DNA from: Klebsormidium nitens
Taxonomy: Eukaryota > Plantae > Klebsormidiophyceae
Length of the DNA stretch: 64,000 nt
Assembly (NCBI GenBank): GCA_000708835.1
Contig: DF237039.1
Coordinates: forward strand, 150,035 to 214,034
Reading direction: 5' to 3'
This document shows positions 8,201-22,890 of this stretch, piece after piece. A program made the translations under genes and the position numbers. The notes under the pieces are model-generated. The model was not told the DNA's origin and ran no database searches. It worked only from the letters and a program-made list of their open reading frames with translations. The stretch's first letter is position 1, and each line of letters begins with the position of its first letter.

Positions 8201-10233
8201 AGGGTCGGGAGTCCGTTTTCGGATGGGCACAGAAGGAACGAACTGAGATGAACATGCGGCAGACTCCAGAGGCTCGTAGAGGCAGTCCTGTGCGAGAAAA
8301 CCTCCCTTCGGGACAGAACAGCTCGATCTCTTAGCCTTGTACATCTGGAAACAAAGCGCCCACATCTATACATCTGAGAGAAGACACAGGAGGCCGCACC
8401 TGCAGGGCGTCATTCTCGCGCACGCCGGTGGCGCGCCGGTTATTGATGATGGAGCGGAACACGTCGCGCAGCTGCTTGCGGGCCTGGTCGCGGCGCAGGT
8501 GGGCGGGGATCGGGAGGCGGGGCATGATGACGCTGATGGGGAGCATGCCCAAATCCAACACATGGAACAGGTCCGACACCTGCGGTCAAAGAACGGAATC
8601 AGGTCAGAAGAAGGATAATCGTCATGACTAGAAACAGTACACTGGCCCCTGCTGTTCGTGCAGAGTGGGCCAATGGAGCCACAGGTCCATATGAAAGAGC
8701 GGGAAAATGACGAAACAGAGCCAAACCAACAAGCCTTTCGCTCCTGCCAGGTCAAGGTCTGCCTATTCTTGGTCTCCAGTTCCTGTAATGTCCACCGCTG
8801 CAGACAAGAGACTCGAGAATAGAAACTATTGGGCATCTTTCACCCCCAATTCATCAGCTCAGCCAAGCTTTACTACCACCTGATCAACTATTGCTTGACC
8901 AACTTTTGATGGGTACCTCACCTGCTCAAACATTTGCTCGCGCACCTCCCTCCCGAGCAGCGTCCTACTGGCCGTCATGATGATCAGCTTGGACAGCTCC
9001 TCCTTGAGATCCACCTCGCCCTCATCTCCCCACTTGCCAAAGAACGTCTGTGCACAGCACAGGATAAGCCTTCAAACACTACTGCACTTGGATGCAAGCC
9101 ACAAAAGTGTAGCTCTGGTTGGGCTTCCTTTCCTTCACTCGTGCTGCTCCTCGCACAGAGTCTGGTCAGAAAAGTCTTCTCTTACACATACGCAGAAAAG
9201 AATGTTTCTGACAGCTCGCTCCATGACACAGTGTCAGAAGATCCTTTTGTTCTCAAACAGTCTGGCGGAAAGCCACTGTGTACATATGACCACTCCACTG
9301 GTTTGCATAAAAGTGGAGAAAGAGAGAGTGGCGCCCAAGACACGCATTTGACCTCTCCTCACCTCTGCCTCCATCACCATCATTTTGACATAGTCCCGCA
9401 GCCTGCTGCTGCGGAGGCTCTCCGCAAACATGCGGAACTGCTCCTGCCTGACGCTGTAGTCAACATCAAAGACGACGCCTTTCCCGAAAGTAGGCACCGA
9501 GTACTGGTACACCTCCTGCTGACTCAACTCCGCCTCAGCGGCCTGCGATTACAAACGTGCATTGAATGACCGTCTGTTCGGCAGCGCCTGCAGCGTAAGC
9601 TGCTGGTGTACAGACGAATGTGCTCAGTGCTATATCCAACCAACCGAGAAGATGACAGAATGCAAAAATGAAAGATGGAGCGAACCAGTGTAGATATCTG
9701 GTCTGCAATTCGCCCTGCCAGGCATCCCTTCTTTAAGAAATGCAAGGTGCTCAAGATTTAAGGTGAGTTTCCTCAACTGCTTCCACAGCAGCAGCAAGCT
9801 GTGACTTTGACCTCCGCTTTCATCAGACGGCAACTAGCTCTTGAGCTCGACGACATACGAGTCCACAAGCAAACCAGGGAGATGAGGCACAGCGGCAATA
9901 ACCACAATCATTGGATCTTACCTTGAAAAAGTGATTGGACACCTCTGGTCCAATAAGGAATGTGATCCTCTTGTGGAACACATTGACGGTGAATACATCC
10001 CCATGCTTCTCATACCCTTCCTTTATGAGTTTGAGCGGGCCATCCATGAACTTCAACACACCACCAATTATTGGAATTGTACTAAGGGTGGGGGGAGCTT
10101 TTCCATTCCTCTTCGTAGCCAATGACACCACCACCAGCACAGACAGGAGGACGACAATGACTGATGCGAGCACAAAAGCGCTACCAGGAATCTGCCCTAG
10201 CAGGCCCTCCAGACTTGCCCTGACATCCGCCAT
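5226..10233 (-). CDS. CYP51: Sterol 14-alpha-demethylase (cytochrome P450 CYP51G type), 8 exons, 498 aa
   Basis: Exons 9922-10233, 9363-9542, 8922-9047, 8400-8579, 7872-8011, 7114-7237, 6172-6381, 5226-5450; all introns GT-AG; total 1497 nt. Motifs: N-terminal TM anchor, [22 protein letters not shown]-helix [12 protein letters not shown], ExxR (KEVLRLQPP), FDPDRF, heme motif [10 protein letters not shown]. Confidence 0.97.
6640..6677. repeat. Perfect 19-bp tandem duplication in CYP51 intron 6
   Basis: cttgagctgagcactccaa x2 (6640-6658, 6659-6677). Confidence 0.9.
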
Positions 10234-11062
10234 CTTCCTGATATCCAAGCGCCCAGATCTACTTTCTCAGATGTCCTAGACCATGATCTTCAGCAACAAG
10301 CTGAATTTCCAATCGTCCAGCTTTGTCACAAAGTTTGTGCCGCTGCGCCTAATGCAAATTCTGCAGATCTAGATTGACCACCTTCCTGCAGAACACCGCT
10401 TGCATTGACAATGAAACGTTGGTTGAACTGCAGTGAAGGAACCGCAGTGCAGAAAACATTGCAATTTGCAGTGGAACGCACTGCGTCCTTTGTTCCTGAG
10501 CCGCTGTCCCTAAATGTGGCAGGGCCGCTTATACCGCAGAATTAGAACCAAAAGGGTTAAAATACAAATCTGTCAGGATTTCGCAAACGGTTTTGTCTCC
10601 AACCCGCAGAACCATGGTTTTCAATCGCTTGTAACCGGATCAAAGTTAAGCAACCACCCAGCTTCTGACCAGACCCCTCTGTTCACGTTTTTGAGGACGC
10701 TAAATCACGCTCTCAAACCAATCGCAGCCATCCAACAGTACAACTGTAAGATCCGACGGTGGGATAAATGAGGTCCTTGCACTGCGCCCTCGCCATCATG
10801 ACAACAGTGGCGCGAAAGCTCGACAGTTTTCAATAGCTTTTCAAGCAACATCTGCAATTTGAAGAAGCGCTCGAGGGGACAGCTGCTGCAATGTCGTGAT
10901 GCTGAAGGGGCTTTGGCAGTTCGTTCTTACACTTTACAATCAGATGAGTACCAGCACAAGGTCGTCGGCAAGTTTCCGCTTCATTTGTATTGCAGATTAA
11001 TATCTGAACAAGGTGATTTGGGTAAAGCTAAGGATAAGCCACCCGCCAACTTGTTTTAAGCA

Positions 11063-13896
11063 ATGATCCTCACGGAGCGGCCTTTTGAACACGTTGCACT
11101 ATCTGTTATGAATGGTTATGAGTCCTACGAGCAGCGTCCAGATACTTCTGGCGCTGCTGCAAGCCAAGAGCTTTCGCAGTTTGATGCCGCCTCGCGTCTC
11201 GAGGCAGAGGACACTGGTAGAGGCGTTGGGAGATCGAGGTTCAGGTTTGCAATGGTTTGTGCTTCAAACCAGAACCGCAGCATGGCGGCACATGCACTCC
11301 TCCAGAAAAGCGGCCTTCTGGTCAACTCCTATGGCACAGGCTCTCAGGTGAAGCTATTAAAGTGATTTGTTCAGCTGAAATTCTAGTGCTTACCCTGCAG
11401 TTATTTTCTGCCTGCATCTTCTCTTTATGGTTGCCACTTGTTTGCCTTCGGTATAGGGGTTCCACATTGTCGGACTGGTCCAGATTGTTTGCCTAATGCA
11501 TTTAATCATACTGGCACTTAATCTTATGTACCTTCGCCATATTCGTGGAAGGCACTTTGTGCGCTGATTGGGTGTTACATTGCTGTGGTGGTTGTGTTCT
11601 CAGGTGAAGCTTCCAGGGCCCAGCCAGAAGGAGCCAAATATCTACAGCTTTGGCACTACATACCAGAAGATGCATGACGAGCTAGCCGCACAGAACCCAA
11701 GCCTGTATCCTCCTCAAAAGAGCGGCCATCAAGTAGCGCTTATCCATATGTTGTTTTGCCTGAACTTATGTTGTGAATAACCTACTGCACCAGTCTGGTT
11801 GTGATGAAACATTTGCTGCTCTTTGCTTTCCACGAAGAAGCTGCGGTACGTCGACCTGTCCAGCTGTTGATGTTTTCTGCCGATGATTTGTCCGGGGATA
11901 TCTGATAATTGCAAGCACTTCATAGGTCCCGAAAATACAGCTCATTAGTACTGTCAGCAGAGTCGTATTGCAAGAAATGTTTTGACAGCACCCCCCTCTT
12001 TCAGATTGTTTCTTGAGTATCTATCTTTTCTATTTGATTGTACGTGTCAATTTCCTTTATCGTCTGTCCCTTGACAACAAGCAGATACCGCAAAAATGGG
12101 ATTCTGGAGATGCTACAACGAAACATGGCGGTAAAAGGAGCTCCTCAGCGGTGGCAGGACAACCATGAAGATGGATTTTTTGACATTGTCCTAACCTTTG
12201 AGGAGCGGGTATTTGATGCTGTCCTAGAAGGTGAGCTCACCTTAGGATCACTTTTGTGATTCAAATGTTGATTCCTGCTGCTCATGCCCAGAAATTCAAT
12301 TCTGCCAGTCAGGGCAACACTTCATCCTCTTGTGCAAGTCCAGAGTAGCAGTTCTGAGCCCCTGATGTTATCATCACCTCCTAGTGATTACAGAGATGTA
12401 CGGGGAAGGATCGCCAGCAGTCTGCCTATCATACCGTGGACCAATCTGGATAATCACCTATGCTTTTCGTTAGAAAGTCTGCACCTATGTTTTAGGACTA
12501 TGCTCAATATGCAGTCGTTGTTAGGTATTCGAATGTTTCAACAATTGAGGGCCAGTCCCAACTTTTGTGTTTCCTCACTTGATTGCGTATTGTGATTGTT
12601 CTTGTTTCTTGCTTCCTTCTGAAGAGCGTTATGCATTACTGTCAGGGCCTGTACAAATGTGCAGGAGGGGATACTCGCAGGGAACTGCCGGTGTTTCATA
12701 TTGTGCAGCTTTTGGTTGCATTTTGGAATCTGGCCAGGGTTCCGTTGTCCGTGACAAATGGCCCTGCTGAGGATCTACTCGCTGTGTGTGCAGATATGCA
12801 GAGTAGGCAAAGCAAGGGACAGAGTGCTCTTGTGGTCCATCTGGAAATCAGAGATAGCCATGAGGAGGCAGCCTCAGGAGCCAAACTGGCTCTTGAGCTT
12901 TGTCAAATGGTGAGGAATGGGACTTTGAACAACGCTTGTACGGTGGTTTTGTCTGTTTTTGCCAATCTGAAGCTTTGCCTTGATCGGAGTGAGCAGTCTC
13001 CTTGCAGAGATGGATGTACAGAATCTTTGTCTTTCTCATGTCCAACGCGTGTACACCAACGTGTGACTACACACACCGCCACAATATACGAGGCCAACTC
13101 AGTTTATACTAGCCTTGCACGGTCAACTCAAGCAGTTCTCCATAGTCTCCGAGTCTTGGAGTATTCCTTTCGGACGGGAGAAAGTATCAACACTGGACGA
13201 TTAGCAGACATGACGCCGCGCATGCCGATGAAGGCTGTAAGCAATCTACCGTAGCAGGGTGCGATGATCCTCATAATTGGATATGGGAGGATCGATGTTG
13301 CTATAGGAGGGTTGTGCAATTCAGTCCTTCTTCTCCGCTGTGCGCTCCTAAGCGGATATAGGCCCATCAAAAGTTGGTCAATGCAAGTCGGAGCTTTGCA
13401 GCCGCTGGACACTAAATTGACAATCCATTTGCCCAAGTGGGGCTCTGAATCCGCAGTGCACATGTTGGCTCACTCTGGGTAGCACAACCAGTAACTTTGT
13501 ATATATTCGGATGCCTGCAAGCATAGTGATATCAAGCTTGTCAGGTACAGGTTTGCTTCTTTTGTGTTCGGCAAAGGCTGGCCAGGTGTCCACCTTTTGA
13601 CACTTGGCCGGCACCAAAGCACTTCACATTCATGCCCAACCCTGTAAGATGGGTAAGACTTGCCTCGGATTCATGAATATCGAATATCGACTGAAGTCAG
13701 GGCGCTATCCGGTTGTCTAATCGATGCAATCTGTTAGCTAGCCTTCGTCATGGAAGTTTCAACTGACTCCCAAATTTCCTGCTTGTGCTTGCAGTTTGAG
13801 GAAGTAGAAGCTTGGGAAGACGGAGTAGATCTAGTTTTAGAGAGATTTGAAAAGCGCTACAAACGAAGACCAATATACGAAGTATGTTTCTTCTAG
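11063..13896 (+). CDS. SSU72: RNA polymerase II CTD phosphatase Ssu72, 5 exons, about 249 aa
   Basis: Exons 11063-11347, 11604-11704, 12085-12230, 12794-12909, 13795-13896 (750 nt). Catalytic CX5R motif VCASNQNRS, plus GTGSQVKLPGP, TFEERVFD, EIRDSHEEA and terminal EVCFF*. Alternative start ATG at 11108. Confidence 0.96.
11342..11611 (+). repeat. 14-nt direct repeat spanning both junctions of SSU72 intron 1
   Basis: tctcaggtgaagct at 11342-11355 (donor) and 11598-11611 (acceptor); the intron is 11348-11603. Confidence 0.9.
11705..12084 (+). other. U12-type (minor spliceosome) GT-AG intron, SSU72 intron 2
   Basis: The 5' site GTATCCTC is close to the U12 consensus RTATCCTT. A branch motif TCCCTTGAC (12067-12075) has its A 10 nt from the 3' end, and there is no polypyrimidine tract. 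The junction is required to keep the SSU72 frame (SL|Y). Confidence 0.8.
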
Positions 13897-14143
13897 CTTC
13901 AACAATCTACAACGAATGGTCCACTGCATGTGCATGAATCTCGTCGACCATGTGGCACTAAGTGATATATAACACAGGTTGAAATCATTCTTAGTGACCA
14001 CGCTTCGATGCACTGGAAACAAAAGCAGGCTGGCAACCAACAGACCGCGTCACGGGCGGCTAAAGCTTTCAATGTCAGAAGCGTAGAACCATACAACTCG
14101 ACAAAGGTTCAGTCTTAGTACCGGTAATACACGATAATGAGAT

Positions 14144-17066
14144 TCACGTCCGTGTTGGTCGATAGTATCTTGAAATATCCTCGGATTTGAAGCCTCGCTG
14201 CGAAAGTTGACTTCTTGATGGGCTTCCGGATGCTCGTCTGGAATGTGTTTCGTTGCACTCCAGGCAGAAAACTCGATCATACCGTTCGTCATAGCTGCAA
14301 GATTACAAAGAACAGTGTTTATTGCGCCCTTTATTCTTGGTGCATAAATGAGTGTCCTGAAGCTGCGCATGCCATCAGATTGCCTTTGTCGAAGGCCGGC
14401 GGCCAAAAAGGCGGCGGCTCAAACACTGATTGCGTAATCAGCCAGGAGCATCAAGTCGGTGGCCGAGTTCGGCCACGTGACGAACGTCCCTGAGGCAAAT
14501 TCAGCCGCTTCCCGTGTTACTACCCCTCACTAAACTTCGTATGAAGCCTGCAGTGCTAATAATAAAGATGTACTCTGGACTCGCCATTCAGTCCACCCAA
14601 GATTCATATGTCCTTCTCTATTCCCTGGTTCGTCCCGATGAGCGGACCCGGAGCAAGGCTAACTATTTGCAGGCTTCGCAAGATGCCTTTAAAGGCTTCG
14701 GCTTTTTTGTAAAACGACATAAAACGACGCTCAGACATGCTGAGACGAGCGAAGTCGATTGGAAGAGCTGCCAAGGTCGTGATGCGAGGTGGGGTGCTCC
14801 TTAACAAAAGACAAGAACCTTTTAGCTCCTTTTTTGGCTTTTCGCTTTATTCATTGTACTTTAGGTCCTGATGCAAAGCGCTTTGAAGCTTGCTAGATCA
14901 ACCGGCCGTTGTGTTTCTTACATCGGTTTGATTCCCTTGGAATTGTACCTTTGAAGAATGTACTGTTGGGCACAATCGACCCCGCTTTAGTTGGGAACCG
15001 ATGTTCTCCGACGATCCTCAGCGAAACTTTGCTCTAGCGGTCTCTCAAAAAAGACAGGTGCCAGCGTTCTTGCAGCGAACCTGGGTCGCACTTCGAGAGG
15101 TTTGTACTGCCACAGGAGGCCACATAAGCGGACGATCCCGCAAGGGGTAAGGAACGGGCTCACTTACTTTGTAACGGAGCACTGTTCACAGAAGGGCTCT
15201 TGACAACTCTCGCAAGTGCGTTCGCGCCCACAGCAAAGCCGTTGCCTGCAACGCAACCAGATAGCGGGAAGCTAAGTATCGTCGCCTAACGTTTGGTGGT
15301 ACCTCTACGAATCCGTCTCTCAAATTTTGGTGCAGAAGTTTCGAATCTGAGGCTTTCTTTGAGGCCTCCGTGAAGCAGACTTTCCCCTTTTTGCTGCTTG
15401 AAGAATAGACTCTTCCTATTCCTTGAGACAGCCGGGTACAAGTCGTTTCCCGCCCTCAAGGAAACACACATTGAAATACGAGGACTTCCAAGCAGATCGA
15501 CCTTCCGCCACTCCCACAAGTGTGAAAAATGGGACTACTCACTCGCAGTGCGTGCAAAACGTCTCGCCTGGGTCCCCGCACTCTCCACATCTCCAATCCG
15601 ATACGTCGATGTCCATAGCCCCTGTTTCGCTGACTGCAGTCCCGGCGCCGTTTGGGCCGTGAGACAGGGCGGGGGTGCCCATACTACCAACACCTTGAAA
15701 GAAATGCATAAGAAATCACTTTCTGATATCGGTCCAGGTGTGGTTGGGGAGTCTAGCCGAAAAAGGTATGACAGCTGTTCCGGGCCAACTTACGCCCCCT
15801 TTGTTGTGGTCGGGTACTGCAGTACCCTGGATCCGTGTATTCAAACAGAAAGTTTCCGTGGGAGAAGGTATTGGGTTTTTGGCCTTGAATGGCTCCTGGA
15901 AGAAACTGTAATTGTGCGGAAAAGCTGTGCTCGCTTTCAAGATTGCAGGAAGTCCGATTGGCCTCTGACATTGAGACAAGGAATCAATGGACTGGGATGT
16001 CTTCCAATTTGACCCCTGGAAAGGAAACTCAAAGCGACAAGATGGTTGAGTATGGGTTAAAGAAAACCACAGATTAAGAATCAAAGGTGCATCACTCTAA
16101 CGGGTAGGTAAGGAACGCTGAAACTATAGTAGATGTCCGTTCGCACTTTGGCACAACCTGACCTCACACCAACACAAAGTCAAGAGACTCCAGGGGAAAG
16201 TAAGGGCCGCATTGGTAATCTGTTACGCGTTGCCCCTTCCTAGATAACAGAAGTAGGTACTTTGGCTTCCTTACTGATATTGTCACCAAAGGAGGGTTCC
16301 TGGCAATAGGATGAATCAAAAGCCACATTCGCCGAAAATGAACCATCTGAAGTTGCCAGACTTACTAGGGTCTCGAGATCCTGACGCTATATTCTGGTGG
16401 TGAGTGCCCGTGCTTCCATTGGGAGCCCCGTTAGAATGGTCTGAGGCGGCGCTTGCCCTGGCGCCGGCTCTAAGTAACCTCAGAGTGTGTTCTGTAGGAA
16501 AGAAGCGCCATGACTGTTACATAGATTTGAGGGAAAAGGGCAGCAGCAGTCAACGAAAGGCCACAGGCTTGTCCAATGGACGTTCGACTTTCTGGTGGCA
16601 TGATCTGACCATTCTGATTTGTGCATCTGGAATGCTCATGATCACCACTAAAAGACCTTCTTGGCGGAGAGGAATGTTTGAGACATCATAAACCGCACTT
16701 AAGCATCAGGGAATGTCAAGAGTACTTGAGAGGTGTGTCCACAACAAGTACGTACAGCACTTGCCCAACATCCAAGAGGGAATGAAGCATTAAAAAGCTG
16801 GTATCTTAAGTTCTTGGGGGGTCACATTGGCCAATCTACGTCGCCAACCGCCAGTTATAAGAGATGTGTCCAATGTGAGACTCAGTTCCGCAGTCACCCC
16901 AGCCGCGATTGCCCAGAGGATGAAAGGAGCACAATGGAGAAGTCTGTTGAACATCCGCAGGGTAATGTGAAGTGCGTGGACCTTGTATGCTGGCAGTATC
17001 TTCTTTCAAACGCGTGCCCTGGCCCCTCTCCTGTCGGCCCCCGGTTGGCTCCCTTCGCTTCACCAT
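14144..17066 (-). CDS. SIVA1: Siva-family (SIVA1-like) Cys-rich zinc-finger protein, 6 exons, about 230 aa
   Basis: Exons 16982-17066, 16366-16491, 15794-15895, 15543-15693, 15168-15245, 14144-14294; all GT-AG and phase-compatible; total 693 nt. N-terminal MVKR...EHTLRLLRAGARA. C-terminal CGECGDPGETFCTHCEQRLCCGRERTCESCQEPFCEQCSVTNYDERYDRVFCLEC has the Siva cysteine spacing. Exon 1 is the least certain. Confidence 0.7.
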
Positions 17067-17961
17067 ACCAGCAAATAATCCAGCAGCTTCTTCGAGAAAC
17101 TTCGTCCCACCTGACTACTGGCGAGGTACTTTTTCTGGCCGTACAGATGCCGCAAGAGGAGCCTAGCTCAGCTTCAAGTAAGTGCCTCTATCGTTTTGTA
17201 CACTTCATGCAAGCACCGAGACCAACCCACTCTTCGGGCTTTTCTGATTCGTATCAAAGATGCCAGGATTGAATAGCTGGCCAATGCACGCAGGGCGACG
17301 GATCTAGAGATAAGTGCAAAACCTAAGGCTAGGACCTTCTAATGAGTTTCTGAAGTGGACGATGATGATGGAGGTCAGCATTGGGCGCCTTTAACCACCT
17401 TCATAGCTTGGCAGCTTGCACTCTGAACAAATTGAATCAGTCCCACGGTGCAATTGCAGCGGCAGCCTTGGCGGCTGGTCCAGCCTCAGGCCCAGGGACG
17501 AGTTCGAAGACTCGAGCAGAGACGTAGAACAGCGTCCAGTATCCGAAAACGTGGTGGTTCGACGCCGAAGATACAATCGGTATTGTAGCCCTCTGCGAAA
17601 TGCACAGGGTCGAATCACTCAAAGTTGGCTAGGACGCCTTCGTCGTACCGTGACCAGCGCGGGGCCTTTCCCAGCCTTCGGTTTTATTGGCGAAACAGTG
17701 CCGCTGCCACTGGCGCCATGCAAGCTTCAGAATCACAAGCTTGCGACTTTTCTCTGTTTCTCCTGTGGATCAAACGCTTGATGACAGCGTCAAGACACAA
17801 GCGTACGATCCCGCACCTTTATTGAAGTTTCACTTGTTGCTAGCTCCCTATCCTCACTTCAATGTTCCTCCAGCTCAATGTGCTCTGAACCCTAATCTCC
17901 GGCCCGCTGAATGGCTTAGCTCTAAACACTCCGGATACTGATGTCTTGAGAAGCATCTGGA

Positions 17962-20900
17962 ATGGCGACCTCTTTGCGGCGGAGCATATCCAGTATGCCG
18001 AGCCAAAGGGGCTCCTTTGCAAACCCATTGCCAGCTGACAGCAGCTTTGCAAGCATGTCTGGATTTCTTGAGCTTGAAGCGACTCAGCAGCTAGCGCCAC
18101 CAGCGGACCGTTTTAGCGTTGTTGGCACCTCTAGCTTTGTTGGGGGCACAGGTGAAGAGTGCGCAGACCTTCGAGGGCGGGGATTGGTGGCCCTGCCTGC
18201 GCTTGGGAGACAGTCAGGGTTGACCGCAGTGGACCTTTCAAACAATAGCATAGCAGGCCTGGAGTCAGCTCCGGAAGAGTTGCCGGACGATCTGCAGGTG
18301 AGCTGACAAAATTCTATCTTCGTTTGGCATTGAAGGCATTGCGGATGGTAGCTGGAGGTGCTTGACTTTGGCAGATTGGGTTTAATGGTTTTACCGGCTG
18401 TTGTTGATAGACAATGTTGACCAGCCAGCATGATGCAGACGGTGATTCGCAAGCTGTTTTGAGTACTCAGATCTGCTGTCCTTTTTCGAGGACAATATGG
18501 CCTGCAATCAAAGTCAAGCGAGTCAGTCAGGTCAGATCAGTCAGGAGATCTTAAGAGCATCATCTTCTCTTCAGGCCTCCCCTCGCATCTTCCTTCTTAT
18601 TGGCCACAACTTGAAGCTATTCAACTCAAAGCACCCCCAGTCGATCTGCAAATTTGGCTGAAACTCTTTCCTGCCATGAGCAATGCTTCTGGAATGGTAC
18701 GTCAGTCTTCAGTTGCTCCAGTCGCCGCCGGCATTGTGCAAGTCACCGCAGCATTCCACCTAGCAGGCTGCTTAAGAACAGCTCACTTGCGTAAAGCCAG
18801 CTTACACGGTCAGCAACCAGATCTCCCCTCATGATCAGCAATCAGCTCTCAACCCCTCCTCTTTCTCACCTCAGACCAGTCTCGTTTCAAACTCTCAGTG
18901 TCTCCCTCTACTACTTCCAGATGCTCTCCCTGGCTGGTAACAAGCTCTCGGACCTCTGCCACCTAAAGTACCTGACTGCGTGCACCTCCCTCATCGACCT
19001 CGACATCTCAGGCAACCCTGTAACCGATGGTGCCGCCAGGATTGGCTTCGACCTTCGACCGTTCCTGCTCTTCCTTCTGCCACGGTTGCAGAGGTGAGGG
19101 TGATTATCCTGGCTTTTACCCTTTCTGGACTTGACCCGTTGCTTATGGAAGGCCGGGACTTTGTGAACCACTGCCCTATGAATTCAGTGGCATAGGCAGA
19201 TTGAACAATCCTCAGCTCTTGTCTGTCACAGTAAGGGACTATCCTATAATTCGCGGTCTGGCAGAGACTTGCACGTTGGATAAAGCCCACATACTACGTG
19301 GGGAAGCGAATTTCTGACCTGAGCGACAACCTATTGGAAGCATTGACTGCAGTGAACAGCTGAGACTTATTTCCTCGTATCCACTTGATTGGCGGGAAGA
19401 GCAAGGGCGCTCGAAGACGACTCGCTTGGTTCATAGCGAACTTTCTGGGGCACTTTACATTCTTATCCACTTCGCTCTTTTTGTTCTCCGTTTTTCCGTC
19501 TCTTCGACCCCGTGATATCGAAGCGACGGTCCTTCGTTCATAACGTATCTTCCCATTCCGTCTGAAGGGATCTCCCGCAAACACCGGCTTGCAAACAACC
19601 TGCTGCTTTCACGTGGATCCGGAAACCTCACTTTTTCGACGGCGCTGAGTGCCGAAACTCGGAAGTGAATGACGACTGGGCTCGGACCTACGTATAGCTA
19701 GCTGCATCAAGGCCTTGAAACTGACTCTTCACCACAAGCGCAAGAACACGATGCATTGCTTTCAAAAAATGCTTCCACACAATGTTGCTTGAGTACCAAC
19801 AATTGTCTTATGAGGGCGACGGGCTGTTTCGACCCAACTTTCGGAGAAGCTAGAGTGTCGAAGGTTGTTTTCTCAATCAAATCTGTACTCAGACTTGATT
19901 CCTATTTCCTTGATTCCAGCCCAATCCCGGACATGGAGAAGGTGGAAAGAAGCTGTATCCAGATCCTTTCCAGCCGTTCGAAGAATTGTTGAGGAATCGT
20001 CGTACAAATACGGAATACTTTAAGAATCGAACCAAGGGATATACAGAAACAGCTGCTATGGAAACCCTCAAATCCCGAAACCGTGAATATGTTCTGACGC
20101 TTCTCCCAGGCTGAACGGGCAGGACGTCCGGCAGGCGCGGCTGCTGGAGGCGTCGCGCACGCTATTCACGGACGCCCGAGGGCGGCTGTCGGACCGGCTA
20201 CTGGAGATGCTGGACGACGGACGGCAGGTCGAGCTGACGCACTACCTGTCGCAGCAGGTCAGCCTGACGTCAGCTGAAAGACAGCGGTCCTATCCTCCAT
20301 GAAACGGGCGTCTAGCTTCGCTTAGAGGGACAATTGACTGTCGCGAAACCGCACATGTAAGACTTTTAAAGCCAACGGTAGAGACCCCGAAATGTGGAAC
20401 GTTTCTCTGACGAAACGTTTGCAATTCCCCTACACGTGTTTGGCCTGTTGGGACGTTGTGAAGATCGACAGTCCCTTCGACTGTCCCTTGCGCCTCTGCG
20501 GCAGTCCTTTCACCTGTGTACGTTGTGGACATCGGTACCAGAATGCAGCAAAACTTGCCAAATCTGCAAAACACTACAATCACAGGACCTAAAGCCTTTC
20601 AGGGAATGTTGTTGGGTTGTATCAAAGCCCTGAGAATTTGTCCACGGAATGCTTGCTGGGAGTGGCAACAACCGCCAGTTCTGGTCTGTGCTTCTCCAAC
20701 AAGCTAGTAGCTGCAATCCCCTCCGCTCTCTTCCTCCTCTACCAAGCCTCTTGGCCTCTCTTTTTTTCCTCTCCTCTCTTCAGACGTTTACTTCCACAAT
20801 CTGCTTCGTTTTCCCTTGGTATCATCTTAGACTACTTGTTCTGAGCTTCTCATCTTTGAGCTTTCTCCCGTCAACTTTTGCGCTGCCCACACTTTCTACA

Positions 20901-22890
20901 ACTTTGATTCTCGCCGCCGTGCAGTGCCCTCTTGTCAAGCGGCCTCGCCACGTCGACTCCGTTCCCAGCAGCCCCCGCGCTGCGCACAGACCCGAAACCT
21001 CCCAACCCCTAAAGAACCCCGAAACCTTCCCAAGCTCGCCGATCGATGAAGTGCCCGTCGGCTCGGGGGCGCGGCGCGGCCTTTCCTATAATGGCGTCGC
21101 TTCCAGACATGTAAGGGGACGGAGGACTCCGGAGAGGGCCCTGGGCGACACGAGAGCGCCGGAGAGCGCTCCTGTGTCGCCCAGAATGCGAGTGTCGGAA
21201 AACGCAATCATGGGGTTCGAGGGCTCCGGCGGACGGAGCCCCACGGAAAAAAAGCCTACCAGCCCGCGGTCGCCTTTCAACCGGGCGCCGAACCGTAAGG
21301 CCAGGGCGACCAAGAGCAGGCCCCAAGAGACCGGGGCCAATCACCGGGAGGGGACGAGTAGAGTCAGAGCTGATGTTGGTGAAACCAAGACCCCGGAGAA
21401 TCATTTCTCCTTGACTCGAGAAGCCGAGACTACAGCCCGAGCGGAGAGTGTTAATACTCCCAGGAGTCCCCAGAAAGCACTAGCGAAGAGGTCCTTCAAA
21501 GATATGGATCCGTCTCGAAAAGCTCTCGAAGCGATTGGGGAGTCACCTGAGCGGCCAGTGGATGACGGACACGTGGCACTCCCGCAGAGCCCCGACGCAG
21601 AGGTAGAAACGGAGATGGTCAAGCGGCTGGTCACGGCGGAGTTGGTCGCGAGCCCTTCGCATTCGCAGCTCGAGACCCTGGCCGGCGATGTGAAGGGGCA
21701 GAGCCGCGACCTTTCGGACGTCCGCCGGGAGCTGTCCGGCGTCAGGAAGGAGCTCCGGCACTCGCGCACGCAGGGCAACCAAGAGCTGGCGGACGTTTGG
21801 GCGGAACTGACGGAAGTCCGGACGGACCTTCGGAATTCCGGCGCGGAACTGGGCCTGGCTCGTGCGGACGTCAACAGGGCTCGGACGGAGCTCGCGGACG
21901 TCCGGGCCGAGCTGGGCACGTGCCGCAAGGAGTCTCGGACGGCGTGCGCGGAGCTGGGGGCTTCGAGGGCGGAACTGGGCACCGTTCGGAGGGAATTGGA
22001 CGCTGTTCGGACGGAGCTTTCCGGCGCTAGGGCGGAACTGCAGGGGCTCCACTCGCGGGTTCGGGCGGAATCGGACGCGCGCGCGCTCCTCGAGGAGGCG
22101 CTGAGGCGCATGTGGGCGGAGTGCGTTCAGCTGCGCGCGTGGCAGGAGGCGCAGATGGCGCAAGAGCGGGCTCGGGCGGCCGCTAAGGTGCAGAGGGTTT
22201 GGAGAGTTTGGCGAGCGCGACGGGAGCGGGAGGCGAGAGTAAAAGAGCGGCAGTGGCTAGAAGAGGTCTGTACTCTGCCTATCCTGGTTGAATTTCTTTT
22301 TAAGATTTGGAAGGGTACCCTGAAGGTAATACCAGGGTCTGCTGACGTGCTCGATTGGGCCTTATCTGCCTTGAGTGGCCTTATTCTGAGAAGGGGACCA
22401 AGGGGCAGCGTCTGCCCTTCTGGTCGAGTGTGAAATCTGTCGGGTCATGGCGCGCGAGGTCTGTTGCGCCCTCTTAGGACCACTTGTCGAATTTGAAGTT
22501 CAGTTTCAATCTCCGAAGTGCGCAAATTTCAACCTAAGTTCCTAGGAAATCGCTTCTTATCTGCAGGCCCTACGGCCGCACGTCGTCAAAGTACAAGCCC
22601 TGATCCGAGGGTTTCTTCAAAGGCGTCGGACGTATGAGCTGAGAGTGAGAACGGCAGCGGCCGTCCGCATTCAAGCGATGGTCCGGGGATACATTCAACG
22701 GAAGAGGATCAAAGGAGCAATGTGTCAGCTGCAGAAAGACCAGTGGGCCAGGCACGAAGTCGAGGCTCTGCGAGGGCAGTTGTACCATATGCAGCTTTGG
22801 ATGCATCAAATGGCAACGTCTATAGCCAGTGCACCGGGTACACGCATACCCTGTCTAGGTCAGTCAGGTCCCGACAAGCGAGGAACTTGA
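17962..22890 (+). CDS. CEP97: CEP97-like centriolar LRR + coiled-coil + IQ protein, 5 exons, about 773 aa
   Basis: Exons 17962-18297, 18921-19093, 20110-20257, 20925-22265, 22567-22890 (2322 nt). LRRs (LTAVDLSNNSI, LSLAGNKL, LDISGNPV). The LRR-cap FDLRPFLL...LQRLNG...GRQVELTHYLSQQCPL matches the CEP97 motif as I recall it. IQ motifs VQRVWRVWRAR, VQALIRGFLQR, IQAMVRGYIQR. Confidence 0.85.
21717..22050 (+). repeat. Degenerate 21-bp (heptad) coding repeat in CEP97-like exon 4
   Basis: DVRRELSGVRKEL...ADVWAELTEVRTDL...ARTELADVRAEL...SRAELGTVRRELDAVRTELSGARAEL. The nucleotide unit resembles gacgtccgggcggagctg, recurring with 7-codon periodicity. Confidence 0.8.

Follow-up and report, generated by a model that had tools for sequence, protein, structure and literature searches.

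Work on the Siva family has been carried out almost entirely in vertebrates and ties these proteins to CD27, to p53/MDM2/ARF and to BCL-XL. In animal Siva-1, residues 1-33 suffice for nuclear import and are followed by an amphipathic helix and a death-domain homology region, and the C-terminus consists of a B-box and a zinc-finger-like part with 13 cysteines in the mouse protein (PMC3935273). Human SIVA1 binds RAD18 through residues 40-58 and PCNA through a divergent PIP box at residues 83-96 (Q85, I88) (PMC4068132). Beyond animals, a review lists Schizosaccharomyces pombe SPBC26H8.13c as a "Siva family protein", the sole phenotype given there being extended chronological lifespan upon overexpression (PMC9290682); because fission yeast has this member, the family is older than animals. 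In our literature search no paper dealt with Siva in plants or algae, nor did any mention PF05458, IPR022773 or KFL_000900250.

Here we analyzed a window of 64,000 nucleotides from the streptophyte alga Klebsormidium nitens (contig DF237039.1, positions 150,035 to 214,034 of the forward strand), and all coordinates below are those of this window unless stated otherwise. The reading that best explains the data as a whole, and which we hold with good confidence, is that the minus-strand gene at 17066..14144 (ATG at 17066, TGA at 14146-14144) is KFL_000900250, an expressed five-exon gene whose 196-aa product belongs to the Siva family and has the layout of animal Siva-1.

The gene is real and is expressed in K. 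nitens. The stretch is covered in 20 public RNA runs from 7 studies, and the contigs of 4 such runs, each from a different study, were mapped on 13700-17400; as assembled contigs, these show the presence of an isoform but not its absence, and carry no strand and no transcript ends. Spliced contigs from each of the 4 runs contain the same four GT-AG joints on the minus strand, and all four joints follow one another on a single contig (X15 record 14, 1307 nt). The resulting coding sequence of 591 nt comprises 196 codons and a stop, and analysis of phase and translation places an in-frame stop 14 codons 5' of the ATG. The features of the gene are as follows.

17067..17421, minus strand: 5' leader of about 340-355 nt; RNA contigs continue from exon 1 to about 17403-17421, and the start is approximate.
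16982..17066, minus strand: exon 1, coding part (ATG at 17066; 28 codons and 1 base), encoding the basic N-terminus that starts MVKRREPTGGRQERGQGTRLKED; joint 16491/16982 in 4 runs.
16492..16981, minus strand: intron 1, 490 nt, GT..AG, phase 1; RNA contigs.
16366..16491, minus strand: exon 2, 126 nt, with the conserved motif (E)HTLRLLRAGARA followed by a low-complexity linker; RNA contigs and translation.
15694..16365, minus strand: intron 2, 672 nt, GT..AG, phase 1; joint 15691(+2)/16364 in 4/4 runs at high depth.
15543..15693, minus strand: exon 3, 151 nt, with the remaining linker and the first cysteine cluster RCGECGDPGETFCTHC; RNA contigs, and a 100% match to GAQ81769.1 residues 72-120.
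15246..15542, minus strand: intron 3, 297 nt, GT..AG, phase 2; RNA contigs.
15168..15245, minus strand: exon 4, 78 nt, with the middle cysteine clusters QRLCCGRERTCESCQEPFCEQCSVT; RNA contigs, and a weak zf-B_box match.
14295..15167, minus strand: intron 4, 873 nt, GT..AG, phase 2; RNA contigs.
14144..14294, minus strand: exon 5, coding portion with the stop codon, in which YDERYDRVFCLECN holds the last CxxC and the tail, of low conservation, contains SEDISRYY; RNA contigs.
13966..14143, minus strand: 3' untranslated region, end approximate; contigs end at 13966 and 14020.

An earlier reading of the same DNA, made from the sequence alone (hereafter the sequence-only reading), had predicted six exons and a protein of 230 aa. 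Of its GT-AG introns, 16981..16492, 15542..15246 and 15167..14295 stand exactly, as do the donor at 16365 and the acceptor at 15694, and the two junctions that it had named as critical (15167/14295 and 16981/16492) are exact in the RNA contigs of all four runs; its additional exon and the 230-aa length do not, the transcripts giving five exons and 196 aa. The additional exon, for which 15895..15794 (102 nt, phase 1) is the one good candidate of the required size, lies inside intron 2 and has no contig joint at either edge. Every spliced contig links 16366 straight to 15693, and coverage at 15794/15895 comes solely from low-depth, unspliced contigs, such as X1 record 5 at 15763-16388; in X1 the depth of the unspliced contig over this interval is ~4.7, against ~104 for the spliced contig. 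Because no spliced contig includes 15895..15794, we take the product to be 196 aa rather than 230 aa.

Upstream ATGs are present in the 5' leader at 17404, 17381 and 17208, each opening a short reading frame that closes before the main ATG; these three upstream frames may exert translational control.

The product is already in public databases. When the translation of exon 3 alone (15545-15691, minus strand) was used as the query against 1.84 billion protein representatives, the search returned a 196-aa protein that is 100% identical over residues 72-120 and that, over its whole length, is exactly the five-exon product supported by the transcripts. This record is GAQ81769.1, "hypothetical protein KFL_000900250" of Klebsormidium nitens (UniProt A0A0U9HUE6), for which PF05458 has been precomputed. 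The gene had been called hidden, a description that does not hold: since the public genome annotates KFL_000900250, it was missed only by a prokaryote-style list of open reading frames. What is new is a Siva member in an unexpected lineage, which automatic annotation already detects and which is undescribed in the literature.

The same search of representatives also gave P0004, a 78-aa fragment on the 98.9-kb JGI metagenome contig L001. This contig carries a whole orthologue of ~204 aa in five exons, with intron phases 1, 1, 2, 2 as in K. nitens, and a convergent Ssu72 gene lies downstream of it, the same arrangement as in our window. At positions 6001-6237 of L001 the metagenome gene caller had fragmented the spliced orthologue, and P0004 corresponds to exon 3 plus intron read-through. 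Because gene callers split spliced genes in this way, searches for full-length proteins miss the eukaryotic orthologues that lie on metagenome contigs.

Conservation between the two algal sequences was assessed by pairwise alignment of individual exons; MAFFT alignment of the exon pieces mis-stacked the repeated FCxxC motifs and was not used. Overall identity is ~44% and is very uneven along the protein. The N-terminal basic block encoded by exon 1 is identical at 19 of 28 positions, the motif TLRLLRAGA at 9/9, and exon 4 at 17/25; all 12 cysteines are kept with identical spacing, and the first 14 residues of exon 5 are nearly identical. The linker and the C-terminal tail are divergent, with indels, and the tail is not conserved. 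Judged from these alignments, the pattern fits a functional protein that would combine two conserved modules with a disordered linker.

Within the 196-aa protein, TLRLLRAGA (residues 31-39) is part of EHTLRLLRAGARA at residues 29-41, a segment that the sequence-only reading had placed near the N-terminus, as we also find. This N-terminal motif may resemble human FEKTKRLLFLGAQA; the amphipathic-helix region (SAH) of the family spans human residues ~36-58. The conserved motif (residues ~24-41) is probably helical; in a single-sequence AlphaFold2 model with a pLDDT of 46.7 a helix spans residues 24-39, and it appears in this low-confidence model alone. Residues ~42-100 form a poorly conserved, low-complexity linker rich in Ser, Gly, Ala and Asn. 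The cysteine module that follows (Cys 106, 109, 117, 120, 125, 126, 132, 135, 140, 143, 157 and 160) has the pattern C-x2-C-x7-C-x2-C-x4-CC-x5-C-x2-C-x4-C-x2-C-x13-C-x2-C, so that the pattern previously described is reproduced by the 196-aa translation. The substitution of one cysteine by arginine beside an extra cysteine, likewise reported before, is present in K. nitens and retained as the CC-G-R variant in the L001 orthologue; because it is shared, we regard CC..R as a feature of the lineage and not an error. Where the algal proteins have CC-x5-C, the animal spacing is C-x2-C-x3-C, with one ligand position shifted.

To place the protein in a family, we compared the full-length sequence with the Pfam Siva profile (PF05458), the check that accompanied the original proposal of Siva homology, and obtained 30.4 bits (E 4e-07; gathering cut-off 26.2). 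The match is a single collinear stretch in which protein residues 12-161 fall on profile positions 23-169 of 173 (147/173 positions). In a search with the C-terminal half alone, residues 113-161, a cysteine region of 49 residues, fall on profile positions 121-169, and insertions and deletions balance to zero. Among ESM Atlas clusters, the ten nearest named ones (10/10) are all Siva, of arthropod or chordate origin; the best of them scores 0.95, a value that according to the tool is reached by shuffled proteins about once in 100 and that ranks neighbors rather than aligning them. The proposed homology is thus borne out by a profile score above the gathering threshold and by Atlas neighbors that are all Siva, and we consider it likely from these sequence comparisons that the KFL_000900250 protein belongs to the Siva family. 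An exon-by-exon Pfam scan gave no Siva match and a weak zf-B_box match on the 25-residue exon 4; because the exon pieces are too short, such a scan is an unfair test of Siva.

A different account would make this an unrelated B-box-type or other cysteine-rich zinc-finger protein whose spacing reached the Siva threshold by chance, through convergence or composition. The margin above the cut-off is indeed only 4 bits. When the C-terminal half is searched alone, Siva is the best family at 21.5-22.9 bits with zf-B_box (PF00643) barely behind at 21.3-21.7 bits, neither of them reaching its cut-off; searched by itself, the N-terminal half has no Pfam match; and a PDB sequence search gave no relative, only chance-level matches to RING/B-box proteins, COP1 and Midline-1 among them. 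Yet the N-terminal part adds ~8 bits to the C-terminal Siva score, in full-length context only, to a match that is collinear over most of the profile, whereas the zf-B_box match on the full-length protein is confined to the first cluster (residues 103-125) and, at 17.8 bits, does not reach its gathering score of 24.1. No other zinc-finger family, a possibility that had been raised, scores above Siva; with the Siva clusters excluded, the Atlas offers no usable neighbor; and animal Siva is itself described with a B-box-like region (PMC3935273). Chance resemblance therefore seems improbable to us, and Siva membership is the reading that we carry forward. Within that reading, the sequence-only account had gone further, suggesting that the protein may act in DNA-damage tolerance or cell death and likening the C-terminal SEDISRYY to a non-canonical PIP box; read in this way, the protein would bridge RAD18 and PCNA and would contact PCNA through SEDISRYY. 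SEDISRYY (residues 184-191) does fit x-x-x-I-x-x-Y-Y near the C-terminus, and TLRLLRAGA, the best-conserved N-terminal motif, falls roughly where human SIVA1 binds RAD18 (residues 40-58; PMC4068132), a position estimated from the coordinates of a profile of about human length and not from an alignment. However, the leading Q is missing from SEDISRYY, and the tail of the L001 orthologue, the only orthologue found, contains neither an aromatic pair nor any motif like a PIP box; by our estimate, a PIP pattern without the leading Q occurs by chance in ~1/6 of proteins of 196-aa length. The human PIP box is central, and the linker that matches its region in the alga is low-complexity sequence, unconserved even between the two algal proteins. 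No Q-x-x-[ILM] in the part of the linker corresponding to human 83-96, a peptide that may mark the family in vertebrates only and a correspondence that is not a direct alignment with the animal protein, is conserved between K. nitens and L001, and there is no E2F-like promoter site within ~900 nt upstream of the ATG. PCNA contact via SEDISRYY is unlikely on this sequence evidence, and we give the bridging role as a whole little credence.

How the gene came to be in this alga can also be read in more than one way. When 5.8 billion protein clusters were searched by word index, with either the full sequence or residues 98-165 as the query (E up to 10), the protein itself was the only match, and scanning metagenomes with the protein or an exon-5 alignment gave no further relative; these results indicate that the 5.8 billion clusters contain no annotated orthologue that is close and full-length. 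Together with the exon 3 search of 1.84 billion representatives, which found nothing besides the alga's own protein and the L001 fragment, and with nearest Atlas clusters that are all animal, this could suggest that an ancestor of the Klebsormidium lineage acquired the gene from an opisthokont by horizontal transfer, in place of ancient vertical inheritance. Against this, the word-index and metagenome searches reach fairly close relatives only and the search of representatives used one weakly conserved exon, and because of that reach they do not establish an absence of Siva from the green lineage; moreover, four host-type introns interrupt the gene, its neighbors are ordinary algal genes, and the presence of the family in fission yeast makes it older than animals (PMC9290682). 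Any transfer would have to be old, because the gene is syntenic in a relative only 44% identical. We judge transfer to be unlikely. Vertical inheritance could be extended to a bolder proposal, that Siva is an ancient eukaryotic zinc-binding adaptor predating the split of the green lineage and the opisthokonts, that its original nuclear job was to dock a RAD6/RAD18-type ubiquitin ligase through the N-terminal helix, that the roles in CD27 signaling, p53 and apoptosis were added later, and that Klebsormidium is a rare keeper of the gene in the green lineage. As a whole this is speculative and its odds are low; if true, Klebsormidium would offer a simple system in which to look for what Siva did ancestrally.

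For the function of a Siva-family protein in this alga, we propose the following. The cysteine module would bind about three zinc ions and form a small protein-interaction domain, and nuclear import and docking to a partner would depend on the basic N-terminal stretch with its helix. The protein itself would act as a non-enzymatic adaptor for a partner of the ubiquitin-ligase type, and that partner would most plausibly belong to the DNA-damage response. We know of no algal counterparts of the animal Siva partners CD27, p53/MDM2/ARF and the BCL-2 family, including BCL-XL, and it is because CD27, p53/MDM2 and the BCL-2 family have no known algal counterparts that we favor a DNA-damage partner. 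On our best reading the algal protein would be a zinc-binding adaptor, probably nuclear, with a conserved docking helix; if we had to guess at its pathway, a connection with ubiquitin ligases or the DNA-damage response would seem the most plausible.

That a streptophyte alga expresses a conserved Siva gene, and that fission yeast has a member too, shows the family to be much older than animal apoptosis and speaks for an ancestral role that was more basic. Study should centre on the N-terminal helix motif and the zinc module, because only they are conserved. The value of the finding is limited in that the protein is public with a Pfam assignment, the homology score is marginal and the functional role is one that we infer.

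Other genes lie nearby in the window. An Ssu72-like phosphatase gene occupies 11063-14300 on the plus strand, with Pfam PF04722 on two exon ORFs and an intron at 12909..13793, where a loose RNA-contig end at 13794 matches 12880-12908. Its last exon extends into the 3' end of the Siva-like gene on the minus strand, so that the convergent transcripts overlap and one RNA contig merges both. Farther along, at 9823-10248 on the minus strand, an ORF looks like a cytochrome P450 exon from the N-terminal end, comprising a membrane anchor and the first part of the P450 domain (Pfam p450, a weak match of 15.7 bits, below the cut-off); we would guess that it is CYP51-like. On the other side, 20649-22433 on the plus strand holds a GC-rich (0.59) open frame of 594 aa that encodes a long repetitive coiled coil (ELxxVRxEL-type repeats) and has weak matches to coiled-coil families only; the antisense ORFs that overlap it are probably artefacts of composition.

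Set beside described proteins, the algal product resembles B-box zinc fingers (PF00643; Midline-1, PDB 2ffw) in its first cysteine clusters, residues 103-125 (17.8-21.7 bits), but it scores below 24.1, lacks the typical histidine ligands of the B-box, and is spanned by the B-box model over only about one third of its cysteine module. S. pombe SPBC26H8.13c, likened to it by family annotation alone, is also a non-animal member of the annotated Siva family (PMC9290682), although it is fungal, and thus opisthokont, and not of the green lineage. The algal protein departs from animal Siva-1 in having 12 cysteines against the 13 reported for mouse (PMC3935273), in the ligand shift CC-x5-C found in both algal sequences, and in carrying low-complexity sequence rich in Ser, Gly, Ala and Asn in place of the PCNA-binding residues 83-96 of human SIVA1 (PMC4068132). 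It agrees with the animal proteins in its small size (196 aa against ~175 aa), in the order of its parts, namely a basic N-terminus, a short conserved helix motif, a variable middle and a C-terminal cysteine module, and in the terminal spacing C-x2-C-x4-C-x2-C-x13-C-x2-C.
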